Notes under the pieces: model-generated
What the model was told of the DNA's origin: nothing
What the model saw: only the letters and a program-made list of their open reading frames with translations
Database searches by the model: none
Made by a program: the position numbers and the translations under genes
Shown here: positions 3,173 to 15,615 of the stretch, piece after piece
Layout: each line of letters opens with the position of its first letter
How positions within the stretch are numbered: position 1 is the stretch's first letter
NCBI GenBank assembly: GCA_047495785.1
Contig: JBLDXI010000135.1
Span: 1 to 15,787 of the forward strand
DNA length: 15,787 nt
Source of the DNA: Lepidodermella squamata
Lineage: Eukaryota; Animalia; Gastrotricha
Direction: 5' to 3'

Positions 3173-3465
3173 GGTGACGTGGAAAATTGGGAAATGTTCA
3201 TTTCAGAAAAAGCTGACATTTTTTCCGAATAATTTAGCAATAATTTACTGACAATGCTACTGACATGTGATGATGCTAACTATACACGCGACGCTGAATC
3301 GCGTGGTTAATTTCAATTTCAACTTGCAATTTTTTTTTCTTTTCTCCTGAAATAAAACTGGATGTGCTGCAAATAAAAGATGTTCCTCGCGAAAAAAAAA
3401 ATTGCTGTGAGAAAAAGGATTTTGCTGCGAAAAGAAGGATATTGCTGACGAAAAAACTATGGTCC

Positions 3466-4120: not shown

Positions 4121-4909
4121 CGATATTTTGAAATTTGCTGCTGAAAAAGTATAATCTGCTGCTGAATAAAGTATCTGCTGCTGGGAAAAGTATCTGCTGC
4201 AGAAAAAAGTATTCTGCTGCTGAAAAAAGAAATCTGCTGCTGAAAAAAGGTTTCTTCGTTTGGAAATAGGGATTTCAACCCTGTGAAATATATAAAGATA
4301 TTGGTTAGAAAATTCCCCCAAATAAGAAATTTATTGATTTTGATATCGATCGGTATCGATTTAGACATATCGATATTTTCCGAAGCTGATGATGGAGTGA
4401 TTTTGACTTCGGAATCTTGTTCGGCGGCCTCGATTTGACTTGTCATGAAGATTCCGGTAACCCACTTCGACATGAAACTATTGGCCGCGCCAATAACAAT
4501 GGATCATTTTTGCGTCGGAACGCGACGTTTTACAAATTATTGGAATTGAAATGAAATGACAGCGATCGGTAAAAATGAAAGATCTCTGAATGCAATCCTG
4601 CAGGGAAAATCAGCTTTGCGAAAGGAAGCTTTCATAGAAGGGGATGTCAGCCTAGTTGAATTAACGACAAATGAAAATGCCGGTGTGGAATAAAATTTCA
4701 TCGCTAAAGAAAATAATACGCGATTATATTCTATTCATAATTATTCAAATATTATTGTTAATTTTATGATGCTAAAATAGGTTTTTTGCGGCTGACACGT
4801 GAGAGGGAAAGGACAGCTGAACTTGCTTGGAGAAGTGCCATGACTAACGGCAACCCTGGATCGCAAGCATAATAGACAATTCATCTAGCGCAACTAACGA
4901 TCGCTCGCC

Positions 4910-4916
4910 TATAAAA
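4910..4916 (+). promoter_or_regulatory. TATA box of the repeat-precursor gene
   Basis: TATAAAA about 110 bp upstream of ATG 5023, with initiator-like TCAATC/TCATT about 30 bp downstream of it. Confidence 0.55.
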
Positions 4917-5022
4917 CCATAGCTGAAAGGTGAAAATTTCAATCTTCATTGAATACCAACGTTTCATCAAAAGCAATTTCCTTTTTCGAATATTTTATCA
5001 GCCATTTTATTCAAGCCGAATT

Positions 5023-6240
5023 ATGATCTGCAAGCTAACGATAGCAGCATGCCTGGTGAGTTTCTGCAACCGATGTGCATATCATATAACTAATGGCATG
5101 ACACATTTGTTTTGAAACTAGGTAGCAGCGGTCCTTTCGAATCCGCTTGGGGAGACCATGAGGCGTGAGAGCGCCTACGAAGAAGCCAAGCGCGGGGAAG
5201 CTGGCTACGAAGAGGCCAAGCGTGGTGAAGCTGCCTACGACGAGGCCAAACGTGGTGAAGCTGCCTACGAGGAAGCCAAGCGCGGTGAAGCTGGCTACGA
5301 AGAGGCAAAGCGCAAGGAAGCTGGTTACGAGGAAGCCAAGCGTGGTGAAGCCGCCTACGAGGAAGCCAAGCGCGGTGAAGCTGGCTACGAAGAGGCAAAG
5401 CGCGGTGAAGCTGGCTACGAAGAAGCCAAGCGCGGGGAAGCTGGTTACGAGGAAGCCAAGCGTGGTGAAGCCGCCTACGAGGAAGCCAAGCGCCGTGAAG
5501 CTGCTTACGAGGAAGCCAAGCGCGGTGAAGCTGGCTACGAAGAGGCAAAGCGCAGGGAAGCTGGTTACGAGGAAGCCAAGCGTGGTGAAGCCGCCTACGA
5601 GGAAGCCAAGCGCGGTGAAGCTGGCTACGAAGAGGCAAAGCGCGGTGAAGCTGGTTACGAAGAAGCCAAGCGCGGGGAAGCTGGCTACGAAGAGGCCAAA
5701 CGCGGCGAAGCCGCCTACGAGGAGGCCAAGCGCGGTGAAGCTGCCTACGAAGAGGCCAAACGTGGTGAAGCTGCCTACGAAGAGGCCAAGCGCGGTGAAG
5801 CTGCCTATGAGGAAGCCAAACGTGGTGAAGCTGCCTACGAAGAGGCCAAACGTGGTGAAGCTGCCTACGAAGAGGCCAAACGTGGTGAAGCTGCCTACGA
5901 AGAGGCCAAGCGCGGTGAAGCTGCCTATGAGGAAGCCAAACGTGGTGAAGCTGCCTACGAAGAGGCCAAACGTGGTGAAGCTGCCTATGAAGAGGCCAAG
6001 CGCGGTGAAGCTGCCTATGAGGAAGCCAAACGTGGTGAAGCTGCCTACGAAGAGGCCAAACGCGGCGAAGCCGCCTACGAGGAGGCCAAGCGCGGTGAAG
6101 CTGCCTACGAAGAGGCCAAACGTGGTGAAGCTGCCTATGAAGAGGCCAAACGTGGTGAAGCTGCCTACGAAGAGGCTAAACGTGGTGAAGCTGCCTATGA
6201 AGAGGCCAAGCGCGGTGAAGCCGCCTACGAGCAGGCTTGA
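5023..6240 (+). CDS. Secreted multicopy peptide precursor (383 aa): signal peptide plus 36 dibasic-site-delimited acidic Tyr peptides. Exons 5023-5055 and 5122-6240
   Basis: A phase-0 intron GTGAGT...CTAG (5056-5121, 66 bp) gives MICKLTIAACL|VAAVLSNPLGETMRR, a signal-peptide-like N-terminus. Then ESAYEEA-KR, 34 x (8 aa + KR) and a terminal GEAAYEQA*. Differences between repeats fall mostly at third codon positions in this frame. AATAAA at 6456-6461. Confidence 0.88.
5161..6240 (+). repeat. Coding tandem array, 36 x 30 bp
   Basis: 1080 bp = 36 units with no indels; consensus CGYGGTGAAGCTGSCTACGARGARGCCAAR. Confidence 0.97.
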
Positions 6241-7182
6241 ATAATTTGAGCGATGGCTGCTCTGTTTTATTCCATTACAAGGGAAGAGACTTGTATTATG
6301 TGCTTTCGCCCGAGTTGTTTTTATTCGTTTCGTTAATTTATAAATCATAATCCTTTTTATTATTGATACTCAATGATGGCTGGAAAAGTCAAACTTTTCT
6401 TATTGCAATCATGGAATCAATCGTTTCTTTTGTTAGTCCCTGTCGCCATCGCGTAAATAAATATTGCAGTTAACTGATGAATTTTTGCTTTCGTACTATT
6501 TCTGATTTCTGCCCAGCTACTTAATTAGGTTGATCGCGACTGGGCATAACAACGAATTTCAAGATTTCCTCTCATGTGAACATTTTGTCAGTGATAAATG
6601 GAGGATAATAGCTAGTGAAAAATTTTAGCTAAAAAGTGTAAGGGAAAATCTGTGTTATATACCGTCCACAAGTTTCCAACACTGTCAAATCTATGCATTC
6701 GGCATTATTCAAGCTTTCTCCGTGTCGGCAAATCGGCTCTCAATTCTGGAAATTCTCTATCCTATGAGAAATTGGTCAAATCCCACTGAAAGCTGTGAAT
6801 ATGGTCTGCATACCGTTCGGTTATTGTAAACATTGTGTGTGGGTACTGCGCTCAGCTTTTTTCAAGCTTTTAAGTCTCACCGGGAAGATTCCTTGATGTT
6901 AGCAAAAGGGGTTCTTCGTGCATTACGCTTAACAAATTGAAAAAGTACTTCAGAATCCTACGCCATTACAGCTTTTGTTTATTTTATTGTCTAAATTGTT
7001 ATAACACGAACCTTTCGCCAAGCACTGTCGTTTTCCAGTTATAAAAATTGTTCAATATCATGTGATTATGTAGACATTGACGAAGGTCGTAGGCGAGTTT
7101 CTTCCAACGCGAATGAATCTCGTGATGGTTGCTATTATTAAGGGTAAAAAAGGTGCCCCCATTTCGGATAGATGAAACCAGC

Positions 7183-7190
7183 TATAAGTA
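7183..7190 (+). promoter_or_regulatory. TATA-like box of the methyltransferase gene
   Basis: TATAAGTA about 65 bp upstream of ATG 7251. Confidence 0.4.
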
Positions 7191-7250: not shown

Positions 7251-8297
7251 ATGTCTGCCATGCGATCCGACTACAATCTGCTCTCCAAGGGCCAGCGTCA
7301 AACTCTGGACATCGCTCGAATCTTTGTGAAAAAAGGAATCGACGCTCACTCGGCCGAGTTGACGCATCCCCTGATCATCGCAGACTTCGGCAGCAGCACT
7401 GGGGCTAATAGCTCAGCTGCCGTTTCTGAGATCATCACCGCAATTCGCGATAAATACGGTTTTGAAGCTACGAAATCAATTTTTTCCATACACGAAGACC
7501 TGCCTGAAAGTAACTGGTCTGAATTTTTCAACTTCATACGCCAGGATAGTAAGTCCTACGTGAAGAGACACGCTGGAGTTCAGTGCTTAGCTGCTGGTTT
7601 CTCGTTCTACCAGCAAATTTTACCGGATGACTGCTTACAGGTCGGTTTTTCAAGCAGTTCCCTACATTGGTCTTCCGGCGCTCCGTGCAAGCTAAAAAGC
7701 CACATTTACACCCCAATGGCTAGTGATGAAGAGAAGGCTCTTTGGCATAAACAGGCAGAGGAAGATTGGAGAAGTTTCCTCGGGTCGAGATCGAAGGAAC
7801 TAAGAAAAGGAGGTGTGTTGATTCTGAATGTAATAACAGGAGGTTATACTTCAGATCGATTGTTCGATGGCCTCTACAAAGCAGCGAAAGAGCTCGAAAT
7901 TTCTGGGTTTATCACCAGCGAAGAACTGGAAGACTTTACTATGCATTTAGTGTTTCGGACACTTGAGGATATTACGAAAACTGATATTTTGGAACCCCTT
8001 GGCTTGGAAGTAGTTACAGCCGAGCTTTGCCCGACCCCGAAAAGCGTCTTTTACGAAGCTTATGAAAAACATCGCGATTACGATCGTTTTATAACAGATC
8101 TCGCGTCGATTTTGGAACCGTGCTGCGAGCCTTCGTTTCTAGCAGCTCTTTCCAATGAGAGGACAGCAGATGAAAAAGCGGCAATTTGTTCGAGGCTGTG
8201 GGGCCATTACAAAAAGGTTCTGGCTCGGGATAATCGCCGAGCGGAGGATATGTCGCTGACTTGGGACAACGCATTTGTGGTGCTCAAGAAGCGATAG
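7251..8297 (+). CDS. SAM-dependent carboxyl methyltransferase, SABATH / Methyltransf_7 family (348 aa, intronless)
   Basis: Family motifs occur in order: YNLLSKGQ; IADFGSSTGANS (SAM motif I); HEDLPESNWSEFF; GFSFYQQILP; GFSSSSLHW; QAEEDWRSFLGSRSKELRKGGVLIL. First ATG at 7251 (the track uses a TTG at 7224). AATAAA at 8333-8338. Confidence 0.92.
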   Translation: MSAMRSDYNLLSKGQRQTLDIARIFVKKGIDAHSAELTHPLIIADFGSSTGANSSAAVSEIITAIRDKYGFEATKSIFSIHEDLPESNWSEFFNFIRQDSKSYVKRHAGVQCLAAGFSFYQQILPDDCLQVGFSSSSLHWSSGAPCKLKSHIYTPMASDEEKALWHKQAEEDWRSFLGSRSKELRKGGVLILNVITGGYTSDRLFDGLYKAAKELEISGFITSEELEDFTMHLVFRTLEDITKTDILEPLGLEVVTAELCPTPKSVFYEAYEKHRDYDRFITDLASILEPCCEPSFLAALSNERTADEKAAICSRLWGHYKKVLARDNRRAEDMSLTWDNAFVVLKKR

Positions 8298-9092: not shown

Positions 9093-9904
9093 TTAACCGG
9101 ACATTGGACTGAACGAATCCAGCATCTGTTTTTGGAGTTCATCGGAGGTGTACTTTTCGACGTTCGAACCATCAACTTTCCAGTTCTGGCATTCACATCC
9201 AGACTTCTTCCATTGCATTAGTGCCATCAGGACGCATCTCATTTCAACTTCTGACATTTGCTTCTGATCATCGTGGAAACCGTCTGCGCGTGTGTTAAGC
9301 GATACCGAATTCCAGACAAGTTTGTTGTTTTGAAACGAGAAACCAGCACCCACGATTTGATCGTCGAGTTCAACGCCGAACAACGACTTGTAAAGTTTCC
9401 CATGAACCTGACCCTCTGCGGCGTCGATGGACATAATCGATGACGATTTCCTCAAATAAATATAACCAGCTTTGCAGTGAACACCGTTCAGACGCCAATC
9501 TGTTTGACCGTTGTACATGAGCAGCATCATTCCGGCATAGTTTTCGCCCAATAATAATTTGTCTGATTTACAGGAAACGTGAAACGTATTGACGGCAATT
9601 TCAATTCCAGGTCTCGGAGGCCCATTTGAAAAAAAAAAACAACACAATCGTCACGAAAGAACGCCGAGGGTATTCCACCGCCACGAAATCGCAGCACCAT
9701 GTGCAGTGTACACTCCTTTTGGATGTTGTAATCTGCTAACTTCCGCTCGTCTTCGAGTTGTTTCCCATTGAAGATTAATCTTTGTTGGTCTGTTGGTATA
9801 CCATCTTCATATAGGACAAGCTGTTTGACCTTGCCGATTGTGTACGACGGTTCAACTTCCAACGTCAACGTCTTCCCTGTGAGAAGCTTAACAAAAAGTT
9901 TCAT
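9093..9904 (-). CDS. Divergent ubiquitin fused to an uncharacterised ~190-aa domain; frame broken at an A11 homopolymer (9629-9639)
   Basis: Residues 1-76 ([20 protein letters not shown]...[13 protein letters not shown]...[11 protein letters not shown]) are clearly ubiquitin-like. The long ORF 9093-9647 overlaps in another frame and joins if the run were 12 or 9 nt. Probable 5'-UTR intron 9908-10007 ending 3 nt before the ATG. Minus-strand AATAAA at 9006-9011. Confidence 0.75.
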
Positions 9905-10222: not shown

Positions 10223-12674
10223 TTACTGTTCAGTATTGTAATTGTACATAATATTGATAAAGTCAAAGTTTTTAAATAGATTTCCGGCCATCGTCTGTGC
10301 GATCCCGTCTTCGATCGTCGACATCGCAATTGGTTCGTTCAAAAAATCGTCCTCAAAATAACTGACATCCACTTCATCAACTTCATCGCCGATCGTGACT
10401 GGCATTTTTCGCTGGATGCGGGGCGGTAGGAGTGGCGGAGGCTCTGCACGCCCTGTTTCTATTAAACGCCAGTCAATGGCTGCAAAAAATGGCTGGTCTC
10501 GAACTTGGCCGGCCGGGCAGTTCAGACTGCCTAGTCGCAGATCAGGATTTCTCTCGAATAGCAGCTTCAAAATCGACCTGGCGTCTTGGTCCTCAATTTC
10601 ATCATAATTCGGCTGAGATGGATCTTCGTATTGTTGCGCTAGCAGTGTGTAAATGTCATGGCCGGACTCAGTCAGGAAAGGAACAAGGCCAACCAGCATT
10701 TCGTAGAGAAAACATCCGAATGCCCACCAGTCGACTGGGTACGAATAGCTTTTTCGATAAACGATTTCTGGCGACATGTGAGATGGCGTGCCGCAAATGG
10801 TTCGAGTTCCACGATCGTCGTAATCGTACTTAGACAACTCGAAATCAATCAAGCGGACATGTCCTGACAAATCCAACATGACGTTGTCGGATTTCAGATC
10901 GCGGTATATTATGCGTTTTTCATGCAAATAGTTCAACGCACAAACCACCTAAACATGTGTCAATCTCCGAGTGAAATATTAACCATAGCGAGTGAAGGAA
11001 TTACCTCTGCTCCATAAAAACGGGCACGATCAACTTCAAAATAACCATTTTGTGATAACAGTTGAAGATGGAACATGATCGCACCCCCAGCAACAAAATC
11101 CACGGCGTAAACTGTTACAAATATTCGAACTTGAAATTTTCCAGCTTCGGTATCATGTAAACCTACACAAGTGGCTGTTTGATTGGAATGTACACAGCAT
11201 GTGGAGCAGAAACGGCGATTTTGAACTAGCCTGTAAAACTCGTAGCTCGGCTTTTTTGATCTCCAAATGCGTAGCAATTCTGTCTTTCCGAACAGCTTTC
11301 AAAGCGACGTATTTCGGCCGCAGGTCATCAGCCGTATTTGAGTGAGCTGTGAAACGCGCAAGATAAACTTTCCCGTAGCTGCCTTGGCCCAAGAGGCATA
11401 TTATTTGAAAATTCGGCAAATTGTACGGCTCGGGAGGGCGCAACCAGCTGGGTGCCTTGTTTTGTCTTTCTACGGCATCAGGGTCCAGTAAGTGCGTAGG
11501 ATATTGGCGAATGGTGTAGTCAGCATCTTCCTCGTCGATGTCTCCCGTAACATCAAGATTGTCTCCGAGGCCAACACTAGTTGCAATTATTCTCGCACGA
11601 CAAACCTGCTCAACCGCTTCCGAGCAAACCGAATGAACGCTGATGCTGCAAAATTTGCACTTTTGTGATGAAGTGCACATCCACATCAAACGCCTGTCGC
11701 CTGAACATCGCTTCGGCGCCACGCAAGTAGTCGGTACAAACTCGTGAGGCAGTTGCTGGAAGTTATCGGTTTAATTTACTGCTCCAATCAAGGTACATAA
11801 ATATCGGATCTTACCTGCATAGGGCAGATCGGGAAATCTTCATTCCAGCAAGATTTGTGTATGGTTAGCCGGCAAACTGCAAAACGTTTTTATAGCAAGA
11901 TTAACTAATGTTTTCGTGTCCTTACATCGGCACCGTAATCCTGGTCTTTGAAATCCCCTAATGGAAATATGAATCTGTGACTGATATTAAACCACATAGT
12001 CAGGCGTGTCTAGTTAGGTCATGTGCTATGCCGAAGCGAATTGTTAGTATTTCCCGAACCTTCTTATGTGCTCTAAATGCAAACCAAAAGACTTCATTGC
12101 AAGCCGAACAAGTCGTCAATTCCGGAATTAACTGAACTTCAAAGTGATGCCCCAATTTAGCATAACTCCTATCCATTCTTTGAGCCCCTCTGCGCCACAA
12201 GGCTCGATCTCTTTGAGGACAGACTTGCGCTACAAGATTAATAGATCCATTTGGGATGAGTTCTCTCTTGAACATAATGGAATTCGTTATAGCGAGATAA
12301 AAATATAAAACTCACGGTGATTATTGCACGGCCACCTCGCCGTGAGTAGCAGGTCTCCAGACACTCTCTGAGGTTGAAGATACAACGCGCCAGAACTTCT
12401 TCGCTATGTTCACTCTCCATTAACGAGACCTCCACCATTCTTTCGGGTATGAATACGGTATTGTCAAAAATTCTCCCACTCCTTTGAAGAAAGGATGCCT
12501 CTCAGGAACTGGAAAAGTGAACTGCGACTTCTCACACACCTGCATAAAAACAAACTTACCCAGCTCGCCATCTTTCATCAAACCACGGCGAATAGCAAAG
12601 ACACCAGCGCTGAAATTGTCCACCGACTGAACAAATAATCTAACGAATACCTCCGTGTTCGCTGATCGACTCAT
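10223..12674 (-). CDS. Divergent novel protein kinase C (delta/theta-like): C2-like, pseudosubstrate, C1a, C1b, AGC kinase and C-tail. Exons approx. 12674-12560, ~12500-12316, 12266-12085, 11957-11926, 11876-11815, 11755-11167, 11111-11005, 10948-10223
   Basis: GT-AG introns of 49-127 bp join in phase from exon 2 onward. Pseudosubstrate RRGAQR; C1a HHF...CSAC...WGFQRPGLRCRFC...HKSC...C; LGQGSYGKV; VALK; YRDLKSDN; TICGTP; VDWWAFG; hydrophobic motif FKNFDF. The exon 1/2 junction and the start codon (12674 or 12713) are unresolved. Confidence 0.88.
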
Positions 12675-13308
12675 AACTTGATAACTTTGATACGTAAAAC
12701 ACTTGAGAAACATGCACCTTTATTGCAATAAGTTGAGAAGAAACTGAGTTTCGATGGAATTACTTACAATAAAGGTATGAAGATATAAAGAGCTAGGGCT
12801 AAGACTGTTGGTCAGAATACTGCTTCGGGCTTCGGGGTACCTTACACAAATTGAGAGAGTCGGGCTAATGCCAGAATTAACCAGATATTACTTGCGGAAA
12901 ACGGAAATTCATTTACGCAGAGATTGGAGATCTACGAAAATCCGAAAACGCGAAAGTGATCAATTTATTTCTTCATTTATGAGCCATACATAATATCGTT
13001 GGAAAGCTCGTTGTATGATCAGGGATTAACTGGCGAAGGGATAATCCCTGCGCCTGCACAAGTAAAACAAACATGAGTAGAGCTATGCTCTTAAAATTCT
13101 GTGACTTGCTAAGCAAAACATACAACATCTTCGCCATTTGTCCATTCAGCGTTTACAACTTCGGCTGGCTCGTCAAGTGAGTTTTAGAAAGTTTTAGGGC
13201 GCCTTTGATCGAAACTCACCTGATCATTAACAGAAGTGCGAACTCTTGAATGTGGGTGGGGCTTCACTTGATATGGAGTTTGGGACAGGAAGTCAAGTCT
13301 CAACCGCA

Positions 13309-13378
13309 TAAGACATAAGACATAAGACAATGTTATTCGTATCGCCTCAGACAGATACGACTATCAATTAATGATCAC
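13309..13378 (-). mobile_element. 70-bp 3' stub of a LINE/SINE with 13-bp target-site duplication
   Basis: Flanked by AGTCTCAACCGCA (13296-13308 and 13379-13391, with a third copy at 13392-13404). Minus-strand tail (TGTCTTA)3 at 13309-13329, preceded by AATAAC and a 7-bp stem-loop TCGTATC/GATACGA (13337-13360). Confidence 0.7.
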
Positions 13379-13877
13379 AGTCTCAACCGCAAGTCTCAAC
13401 CGCAAGCAAAATCCATAAGTGGCAACTTGATTTCATGTGCATTGGTACGAAAGTTTCAATTTTTCACCACGACCTCTACGATCGTAATACGTTTTCATTT
13501 TTCTATTGGTAGGGCAAAAAGATTTGTCTCACTTAGTTTTAGCGCGCATTCAGCGTCAATTTTCCTTCAGAAATAAAAATTTTAAAACATACAATTTTGT
13601 TATATAAATTGATTTGTGTAATACATGAAATCGCGCACAATAATTATTTTATTTCAAAATCTGCTGTTTAGTTCAGTTTTTCGGTCCAGTTTTAGTTTTC
13701 TGCGTGTTTTAGCTCCCCTGCGGTCAAGTTCTTGTGTCGTGGGTCAGTTGTGGTGACCAGTGACCAGAGCGGAGACCTCCCTACTAGAAAATGCTCAGTG
13801 AGCTAGTCCTACTAGTTCCGAGAAGATCAGCTCAGAATTTTCGCTTGTCGCTAGTCGCCCGCCTCGTGCCACGTTTC

Positions 13878-14977
13878 TCATCATCATCATCATCATTGTA
13901 TTGTTTTCCTTCTGATTACACCATTTTTTTTAATTTTATAAAAGAATAACAGTATTTAGGAATGGATTTATAAATGGGCAAAAGAGGATCGAGCGCAGAA
14001 GTAAGGCGACCGTGCACAGCATATAAGAATGTTTATTATAGGATGATGCGCGCAAGGCACGCATACATTAGATAAGGTGATTAAAATAATAATTAGTTTT
14101 ATTTAACTAAGGCCAAATTTGTAAGGACAGGCCATTCTTCCAATATAAATTTTTTGCACGAGTTAACAAAAAGATTTATCGAAGTAATGTTAGTGATAGA
14201 GGCAGGTAGAAGGTTCCATAATTTGGCAGTTCTAATAGCAAAGCTAAAGCCCCTAGGGCAAAGTGAATGTTGAGGAATTGTTAATTTGTTATTAGAATGA
14301 TGTCGAGTAGTAGAGAGATTAGGTTTGAGAAAGAAAGTATCGAATTCTAGAGGATGAGACATATTATTAATTATTTTAAACGCCATCGTAAGGTCGCGGA
14401 GTAACCATCTTTGGTTTAAGGATAGCAATTCAAACTTAGCCAGCCTCTGAATATAGTCGAGGGGAGCCATAGGGGGAGATATAAATCTAGATGTGAAGTT
14501 TTTTAAGCACTTTTCTAAAAGATTACGATGCTTGATTAAATAAGGCTGCCAGACGCATGAGGCATATAGTAGGTTGGGTAAGACATAAGAATTGAAAGCA
14601 CAAATTAGAACTGAGTGATTTCTGGTGGAAAAAGAGTTCAGGATCAAACCACAAAGGCGACGGCTTTTAGCGTATAGTTTGTTGCAGTGAGACGAGAAGG
14701 TCAACCTGCTATCTATGATGACGCCAAGATCGCTAGTTTCTGTCACCGAGTTGATAATGTGAAAACCGAGTAGATAGTTATGGAGTAAGTTCTTGGATCC
14801 AAGACGAAGAATGAAACATTTTTTAAGATTAACTGATAGTTAGTGGGAAGTGAAAAAAGAATAGATAGAGTTAATATCCTGCTGTATATCAGCCGGGTTT
14901 TTACCCAATTTGGCGTAAATTTTTACATCGTCAGCAAATAATCGAATAATGCAAGATTTCACACAGGATGGCAAGTC
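13878..14977 (-). mobile_element. 5'-truncated non-LTR retrotransposon (CR1/L2-like clade): RT C-terminus, 3' UTR and (GAT)n tail
   Basis: Manual translation DLPSCVKSCIIRLFADDVKIY...IQQDINSIYSFFTSH*LSVNLKKC... continues into ORF 14099-14746 (DLGVIIDSRLTFSSHC, YVLPNLLYASCVWQP, FAIRTAKLWNLLP). Premature TAA at 14840-14842. (TCA)6 at 13878-13895 forms the tail. Confidence 0.9.
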
Positions 14978-15615
14978 TCAATCTCATGTTTCATTCAAAC
15001 TTGCGCACTGCTATATTACTAGGAGTCCGAACTGCATTTTCGGCGTATGAGATGAGAGAGACACACTGAAATAGGAAATATTTCTAAGAGTCAAGCACTG
15101 CTGTCTCATATTCATTCTTTGCAGCGAACGTCAAACGCCAAGCTCCATGATCATTTGATTTTGATGATCTATGAATAATGTTTATTAGTGCGATTGAAGG
15201 TTAATTTGGCTCCCCGGGTTGTTTGAGCAATGAGCAATGGATAGTTGGGAGTACTTTCCATCGTTTCCTATGGCCTATGGTACTCTCGATTTTCTGCTTC
15301 TGCCCTCGAAATGATTTTCTAACCAGGTTTTTGGACGACCTCAAAAACATTAATTCACAAGTATTAGACTTGAAGTGAAGCTTTTAGCTATTTATCTGTA
15401 CACGGCTACTGTCTCAAAGTTGCGGATAATTAGTGACCTAGAATCTTCTGCGGTTAAATACCTGGTTCTACTGCTGCGCTTCTGTTTGCGGCAGCTCTTT
15501 TCCATATTTGATTTTACTTCTAGCGTAACAGTCATTTTCTTGTTGATCAAGATAGAATTTAGAGAGTTGGCAAGAACATCAGCTTGAACTTAGTTTCTAG
15601 CTGTAGTCGTTCGTG

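Follow-up and report, generated by a model that had tools for sequence, protein, structure and literature searches.

What does a gene encode whose product consists almost entirely of short, near-identical acidic units, each carrying one tyrosine and each set apart from the next by a pair of basic residues? This question is raised by positions 5,023 to 6,240 of contig JBLDXI010000135.1 (assembly GCA_047495785.1) of the gastrotrich Lepidodermella squamata, which we analyzed within a stretch of 15,787 nucleotides (nt) of the forward strand, here called the window. The protein could be a secreted precursor that is cut into many peptides, or it could remain intact as a repeat protein. We found that the gene is spliced and transcribed, with two exons, a TATA promoter and abundant mRNA, and that the amino-acid sequence of its unit is under strong purifying selection. 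The reading we favor, with a probability of about 0.55, is a convertase-processed polyprotein that would give ~36 anionic, non-amidated octapeptides. Its apparent architecture is of a known kind, that of multi-copy precursors processed at dibasic sites; the predicted product is unusual in being spacer-less, all-acidic and unamidated.

Gene structure and transcription

An RNA run (X1) and a DNA run (X2) were compared over 4700–5200. The depth of X1 was 0 over 4700–4937 and 5074–5107 and reached 10^3–10^4 over 4938–5056 and 5121–5200, whereas X2 covered the entire region, intron included. Because X1 has gaps where X2 has coverage, X1 represents RNA without DNA carry-over at this locus. A GT..AG joint that skips 66 nt was present in two X1 contigs, and X1 contigs starting at 5121 carried the end of exon 1 (ACGATAGCAGCATGCCT) as a loose end. 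A sequence-only reading of this locus had held that the open reading frame (ORF) track misses exon 1 and that an intron at 5056–5121 hides the signal peptide; the joint and the depth gap over 5074–5107 bear this out, and retention of the intron was ruled out by the X1 RNA. The track is blind to exon 1 because a TAG at 5119–5121, whose last two bases are the AG of the 3' splice site, lies in frame with exon 2. The spliced coding sequence (5023–5055 joined to 5122–6240, 1152 nt) has no frame break and encodes 383 amino acids. No second copy of exon 1 was found in the window. The features of the gene are collected in Table 1.

At position 4941, three X1 contigs run into a loose end (...GTATCAACGCAGAGTAACATGGGG), which we take to be a template-switch adaptor of the SMART type; this putative adaptor would mark the 5' end of the mRNA and its + orientation. 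The sequence TATAAA occurs only once within 4800–5023. The 5' untranslated region (UTR) contains no ATG, which makes the AUG at 5023 the first one; the base at position -3 is A. The 3'UTR is also transcribed: of the sampled words of 6241–6480, a share of 0.70 occurs in X1, equal to that in the DNA run. The repeat itself was detected at 5165–6230 with a period of 30 nt and 35.5 copies (Tandem Repeats Finder score 1416), inside ORF 5158–6240.

The depth of X1 over exon 1 was 12,000–15,000 versus 420–710 over the gene's own 5'UTR (20–30x); each depth adds up several variant contigs and is a poor guide to expression. Several X1 contigs join differing upstream sequences to one start codon, and in some spliced X1 contigs residue 12 is Ile instead of Val. 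Besides, a variant continuing ...RRE-AQ-RR-EAG... was present in both the RNA and the DNA runs. We read these observations as several expressed paralogs or alleles with a common signal exon; on this reading the gene is part of a small co-expressed family.

Table 1. Coordinates of the precursor gene and of the methyltransferase gene that follows it in the window.
Feature	Positions	Strand	Remarks
TATA box, TATAAAA	4910–4916	+	~31 nt 5' of the transcript start; read from the sequence
5'UTR, 82 nt	4941–5022	+	X1 RNA contigs start at 4941; no upstream ATG
Exon 1, coding part: 11 codons, MICKLTIAACL, first part of the signal peptide	5023–5055	+	
Intron, 66 nt, GTGAGT...CTAG, phase 0, 36% GC	5056–5121	+	X1 RNA gap and GT..AG joint
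Exon 2, start: rest of the signal peptide (VAAVLS), pro-piece NPLGETM, first dibasic site RR	5122–5166	+	
36-unit array (first unit 9, next 34 units 10 each, last unit 8 amino acids): x-E-A-[A/G]-Y-E-E-A, then KR	5167–6237	+	
Stop codon TGA	6238–6240	+	Directly after the last unit, which lacks KR
3'UTR	6241–6480	+	Poly(A) signal AATAAA at 6456–6461
SABATH-type S-adenosylmethionine (SAM) carboxyl methyltransferase, single exon	7251–8297	+	Pfam Methyltransf_7, E = 2.7e-33; TATA-like element at 7184

Organization of the predicted protein

The spliced N-terminus up to the first dibasic site reads MICKLTIAACLVAAVLSNPLGETM-RR, and the complete product consists of the leader MICKLTIAACLVAAVLS, the segment NPLGETM-RR and 36 units. 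The leader was judged by a rule-based check only, which it passed as a signal peptide: Lys at position 4, a hydrophobic core at residues 5–16, and Val-Leu-Ser at -3 to -1 before Asn18. The hydrophobic leader that splicing had been expected to supply was thus found.

A recount of the units gave 21 GEAAYEEA, 9 GEAGYEEA and one each of ESAYEEA, GEAAYDEA, KEAGYEEA, REAAYEEA, REAGYEEA and GEAAYEQA, in exact agreement with the numbers of the earlier reading. Likewise, on the spliced protein the array begins right after RR, and the last unit stops where KR would start, as that reading had said. KR is present at all internal junctions (35/35), and Lys-Arg is never swapped or replaced there, though both codons vary synonymously. 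Tyr is invariant in 36/36 units, Gly comes first in 32 of the 36 and occupies position 4 in 11, and basic residues are confined to unit positions 9, 10 and occasionally 1. The residue after KR is Gly, or occasionally Lys or Arg, and the residue before every KR is Ala, not Gly. The amidation signal is therefore absent and no amidation is expected, as had been proposed. A C-terminal Gly for amidation is not obligatory in neuropeptides. In composition the protein has 29% Glu, 26% Ala, 12% Gly, 11% Arg, 10% Lys and 10% Tyr; uncleaved, it would have a mass of ~40 kDa and an isoelectric point (pI) of 4.8.

The array also falls into two parts. Units 1–18 mix Ala and Gly at position 4 and bear the Lys/Arg variants at position 1; units 19–36 all encode GEAAYEE/QA. 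Nucleotide mismatches between units reached their minimum at lags of 4 and 8 units, a possible sign of a higher-order repeat of 120 nt.

Selection on the repeat unit

The 34 full units occurred in 20 nucleotide versions that encode only 6 peptides; 10 of these versions belong to GEAAYEEAKR alone. Third-codon positions were polymorphic in 9 of 10 codons (summed minor count 83), and only three first or second positions were variable (summed count 15). Pairwise codon differences amounted to 1740 synonymous versus 381 non-synonymous. By NG86, the non-synonymous rate (dN) was ~0.04 and the synonymous rate (dS) ~0.78, giving a dN/dS of ~0.05, a ratio that is noisy for units of 10 codons that fall into a few amplified lineages and that is nonetheless unambiguous in direction. 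Because third positions vary while the peptides stay the same, at this low dN/dS, it is the amino-acid sequence of each unit that is under selection. X2 further contained a second DNA haplotype or copy, with 5 listed intron differences and one 1-nt insertion; in the flanking exon it had one synonymous change only.

The other reading frames showed the reverse pattern, except for the antisense frame that has its third positions in common with the + frame. Because of these shared third positions, an ORF of 437 amino acids on the minus strand is explained as a mirror artefact, its apparent synonymous excess mirroring that of the + frame. This ORF was rejected as a candidate gene, given that GT..AG lies on the + strand and that the adaptor stands at the 5' end of the + strand.

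Search for related sequences

No Pfam family matched the precursor, LEA families included. A word-indexed search of 5.8e9 proteins gave 62 candidates, none of them significant. In an exhaustive phmmer search of 1.84e9 representatives, we screened the 150 listed of 857 matches for the unit's motifs and for composition and found the motifs only sporadically; we take these matches to be unrelated repeat proteins or proteins of similar composition. Matches in the PDB were limited to pentapeptide-repeat proteins such as DotG. Of the 431 patterns matched in metagenome contigs by a back-translated scan, none was confirmed, and the exact degenerate pattern of 1.2 units had no match in these contigs. 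Full-text literature searches for the peptide strings found none, and exact-protein look-ups returned no record for either the ORF or the neighboring methyltransferase. A protein-language-model search of a protein atlas gave weak leads only (scores ≤0.76). Known neuropeptide motifs (Y-G-H-M-R-F-amide, RFamide and the FD.I/LDSIG type) are absent from the unit, and Rfam and tRNA scans were empty. The sequence-only reading had recognized no known neuropeptide family, and we similarly recovered none from Pfam, the two protein libraries or the literature string searches.

Judged by these comparisons, the sequence family is new. This lack of relatives refers to sequenced and annotated relatives and does not mean that the family is unique in nature. 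The lineage is poorly sampled: the sole match of the neighboring methyltransferase among the 5.8e9 proteins is 32% identical and the best matches of a kinase exon in the window are 35–42% identical.

Cleaved or intact product

If the protein is a processed precursor, signal peptidase would cut after Ser17, in the late secretory pathway an enzyme of the kexin/prohormone-convertase type would cleave behind RR and behind all 35 KR pairs, and a carboxypeptidase would trim the basic residues. The cell would then release ~36 copies of GEA[A/G]YEEA, each of ~0.83 kDa with a net charge of ~-3 and non-amidated. The individual products computed from the array have 7–8 residues, 0.80–0.94 kDa and net charges of -2 to -3. 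The framing by RR and KR, the Gly (occasionally Lys or Arg) after KR, the constancy of KR, the confinement of basic residues and the last unit without KR are all features that such processing logic would predict. According to surveys in insects and molluscs, no convertase site in the precursors of invertebrates is cut more reliably than KR with a small residue after it. In spider venom peptide precursors, anionic pieces are delimited by PQM and iPQM motifs, in which Arg has a Glu within three residues (PMC8290080). The unit ends EAKR and R-GEA satisfy both motifs.

Several points weigh against cleavage into octapeptides. The P4 residue at the KR sites is Glu, and with Glu at P4 the furin-type enzymes of the constitutive pathway would cut poorly; cleavage would depend on the cell type. 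All-acidic, unamidated and spacer-less octapeptides are atypical for neuropeptides. Strict units are also kept by intact proteins with decapeptide Tyr/Lys repeats, such as mussel foot protein 1 and flatworm eggshell precursors. Finally, the Glu/Ala/Lys/Arg composition is friendly to helices, and AlphaFold2 run without an alignment predicted two long ones.

The main alternative explanation is that the product is secreted and stays uncleaved as a ~40-kDa acidic repeat protein, helical or disordered, with a use in matrix, eggshell, adhesion or protection; we regard it as possible, if somewhat unlikely. In such a protein, Tyr and Lys (10% each) could support dityrosine or quinone cross-linking, or the chain could serve as a polyanion in a coacervate. 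The predicted helices span residues 8–170 and 191–371 of the exon-2 product (pLDDT 70–85, mean 74; pTM 0.20). AlphaFold2 gives long helices for most sequences rich in Glu, Ala and Lys. The sequence of the unit allows Glu-Lys/Arg pairs at i to i+3 and i+4, the abundant mRNA is what a bulk product would have, and Glu at P4 would protect the sites in a constitutively secreting cell. Strict Tyr/Lys decapeptide repeats are also found in cross-linked secreted materials. However, no coherent pattern of an amphipathic alpha-helix, a heptad or an 11-mer was seen: the hydrophobic moment was 0.025 at 100 degrees, and its only peaks, at 72, 108 and 144 degrees, are harmonics of the 10-residue period. This period fits neither heptad coiled coils nor the 11-mers of LEA type. 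The Gly that opens 32 of 36 units and recurs at position 4 in 11 argues against selection for a rigid helix. An intact chain is also at odds with the unswapped Lys-Arg of the 35 junctions, whose codons vary synonymously, and with the exact framing of the array by RR and a KR-less last unit. No Pfam family, LEA families included, supports this reading, and the acidic pI is unlike that of known DOPA adhesives. A LEA protein or a coiled coil in particular was rejected, given the lack of a match to LEA_4 or any other Pfam family, the period of 10 and the low moment at 100 degrees.

Altogether, the claim that this is a prohormone-like precursor is supported in part: the gene model, the leader, the layout and the selection on the unit sequence were borne out, and cleavage is somewhat more likely than not.

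Tyrosine sulfation and possible functions

If octapeptides are released, their role could be exocrine, defensive or pheromone-type, or they could act as a counter-ion for cationic secretory peptides. Because the unit has no cationic, hydrophobic or amidated pharmacophore, we give a classical neuropeptide no better odds than an anionic peptide secreted in bulk. The single Tyr of the octapeptide may be O-sulfated. The classical consensus for sulfation calls for an acidic residue at -1, at least three acidic and at most one basic residue within +/-5 and, close by, a residue that induces a turn but neither Cys nor a glycan. In the context R-G-E-A-A/G-Y-E-E-A-K-R, the three acidic residues within +/-5 and the Gly at -4 agree with these rules; the Ala or Gly at -1 and the three basic residues present within +/-5 before cleavage do not. 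Sulfation of the units is thus possible as judged from this context.

A classical neuropeptide or hormone family that acts via a receptor, with sulfotyrosine as the pharmacophore, is in our opinion doubtful. The processing layout is the same as that of multi-copy neuropeptide precursors, and Tyr is invariant in a unit that is under strict selection; non-amidated acidic multi-copy neuropeptides also exist in the orcokinin and pedal-peptide types. In contrast, the searched libraries showed no similarity to any known neuropeptide family, the sulfation consensus is followed only in part, and the high apparent RNA abundance together with several paralogs that have a common signal exon would better fit a gland product.

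A more speculative proposal, which we consider improbable, is that of an undescribed signaling or allomone system: an all-acidic sulfotyrosine octapeptide in ~36 copies per precursor, produced by a lineage-specific, rapidly duplicating family with a common signal exon, and acting through its own receptor or as an anionic effector. Such an effector could be, for example, a release or neutralizing factor for cationic secretory peptides or adhesives.

Comparison with known systems

Multi-copy precursors of metazoans include those of FMRFamide and the non-amidated pedal-peptide and orcokinin types. Another is the Antho-RFamide precursor of Renilla, which has 36 copies (PMC7266959). The predicted protein resembles such neuropeptide precursors in its signal peptide, its tens of near-identical tandem units, its dibasic junctions and its last copy without a site. 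It differs from them in having no sequence similarity, no Gly for amidation, no spacers and a strongly anionic character.

In fungi, KEPs have a signal peptide for the endoplasmic reticulum (ER) and highly repeated short cores separated by KR (PMC7329392). The precursor is similar to these Kex2-processed repeat proteins (alpha-factor and ustiloxin-type) in both respects, and some KEP cores also have an invariant Tyr (PMC7329392, PMC6339444). Alpha-factor and Ascomycota repeat clusters were among the nearest in the language-model search (scores 0.66–0.76, leads only). Unlike the KEPs, the gene lies in an animal genome, and its product lacks a Y-x-I core as well as an X-Ala dipeptide spacer behind KR. 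It also differs from the KEP subclass that yields peptides made on ribosomes and modified after translation (RiPPs), as the DUF3328 and tyrosinase families were not among the window ORFs scanned.

Complex precursors of spiders contain anionic pieces that start with Arg plus a Glu within 3 residues and end in Glu...Arg, with EEAR as the commonest PQM (PMC8290080). As in the spider linear-peptide precursors, there are many pieces per precursor, and the units here end in EEAKR. However, the anionic pieces of spiders link cationic cytolytic peptides to one another; the protein described here carries no cationic cargo, and its site is the dibasic KR. Insect polyproteins of the apidaecin type (rank 6 in the feature search, score 0.68) similarly have tandem short secreted peptides, basic sites and acidic stretches rich in Glu and Ala. 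Their peptides, in contrast, are cationic and Pro-rich with EAEP dipeptidyl spacers, and the precursor had no match to Pfam Apidaecin.

ER/K single alpha-helices (named for Glu, Arg and Lys), group 3 LEA proteins and Tyr/Lys adhesive or eggshell proteins are comparable in their richness in Glu, Lys, Arg and Ala, their predicted helix, their short tandem repeats and, here, one Tyr and a Lys per decapeptide. Unlike these uncleaved helical or repeat proteins, the precursor has a signal peptide, a 10-residue period, no amphipathicity at 100 degrees and a recurring Gly, as well as no LEA match in Pfam, an acidic rather than basic pI, and no Pro or Ser.

Neighboring genes and elements

The gene content of the window is eukaryotic and of animal type; Pfam matches among the scanned ORFs were ankyrin (Ank) repeats, Methyltransf_7, a ubiquitin-like domain and an AGC kinase. 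The nearest atlas clusters of the ankyrin-repeat ORF were Ank/SOCS-box proteins, pointing to Mollusca or Platyhelminthes. The methyltransferase of Table 1 belongs to an enzyme family that is unusual for an animal, and its nearest feature cluster comprised mostly rotifer proteins. Its ORF starts with MSAMRSDYNLL...; neither a hydrophobic leader nor an obvious signal exon further upstream is present.

The position of this gene, ~1 kb downstream on the same strand, brings up the idea that a RiPP-like pathway of an animal acts on the precursor, in which the methyltransferase would methylate Glu or C-terminal carboxyls. The peptides would be rich in carboxyls, and fungal KR-processed repeat precursors (KEPs) feed RiPP pathways, some of which use Tyr (PMC7329392). 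Nevertheless, we find the idea very improbable. The methyltransferase has its own TATA-like element, and because it has no leader it would stay in the cytosol, whereas the precursor goes into the ER; a functional link between the two genes was rejected on this ground. In addition, SABATH enzymes are known for small-molecule substrates, two adjacent genes in an animal genome are weak evidence, and the scanned window ORFs contained neither DUF3328 nor a tyrosinase family.

On the minus strand, a ubiquitin-like domain (9093–9904; Pfam ubiquitin, E = 3.3e-25) ends in ...RGGG and adjoins an ORF of 184 amino acids without a Pfam family, and an AGC-type kinase (10223–11722; Pkinase and Pkinase_C) has an ORF layout that suggests several exons; the named ones among its best matches, 35–42% identical, are fungal. 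Two further ORFs had no Pfam match at E ≤ 0.01. The first (2181–2762, +) has a duplicated segment rich in Ser, Pro and Lys and a ...GDGNCAFRA... motif reminiscent of OTU proteases. The second (14099–14746, -) we take to resemble the C-terminal part of the polyprotein of a retrotransposon without long terminal repeats (non-LTR). Tandem arrays with units of 19–20 nt (TGCTGCTGAAAAAAGTATC and relatives) were present at 1021–1113, 1888–2080, 3365–3456 and 4132–4249, and the copy at 1021–1113 is oriented opposite to those at 1988–2080 and 4136–4249. These arrays may represent a foldback element, an element like a miniature inverted-repeat transposable element (MITE), or a local satellite.

Implications

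Should the protein remain uncleaved, it would be no more than an ordinary repeat protein specific to its lineage. Release of the octapeptides would instead mean a peptide family that is new and easy to test, from a lineage of which hardly any relatives have been sequenced, with an unusual chemistry: anionic, non-amidated and possibly sulfated. The locus also has a bearing on how this genome is read. Tracks based on ORFs only miss signal peptides in it, and genes for secreted peptides can be expected to be systematically under-called, because a short phase-0 intron splits the signal peptide off.

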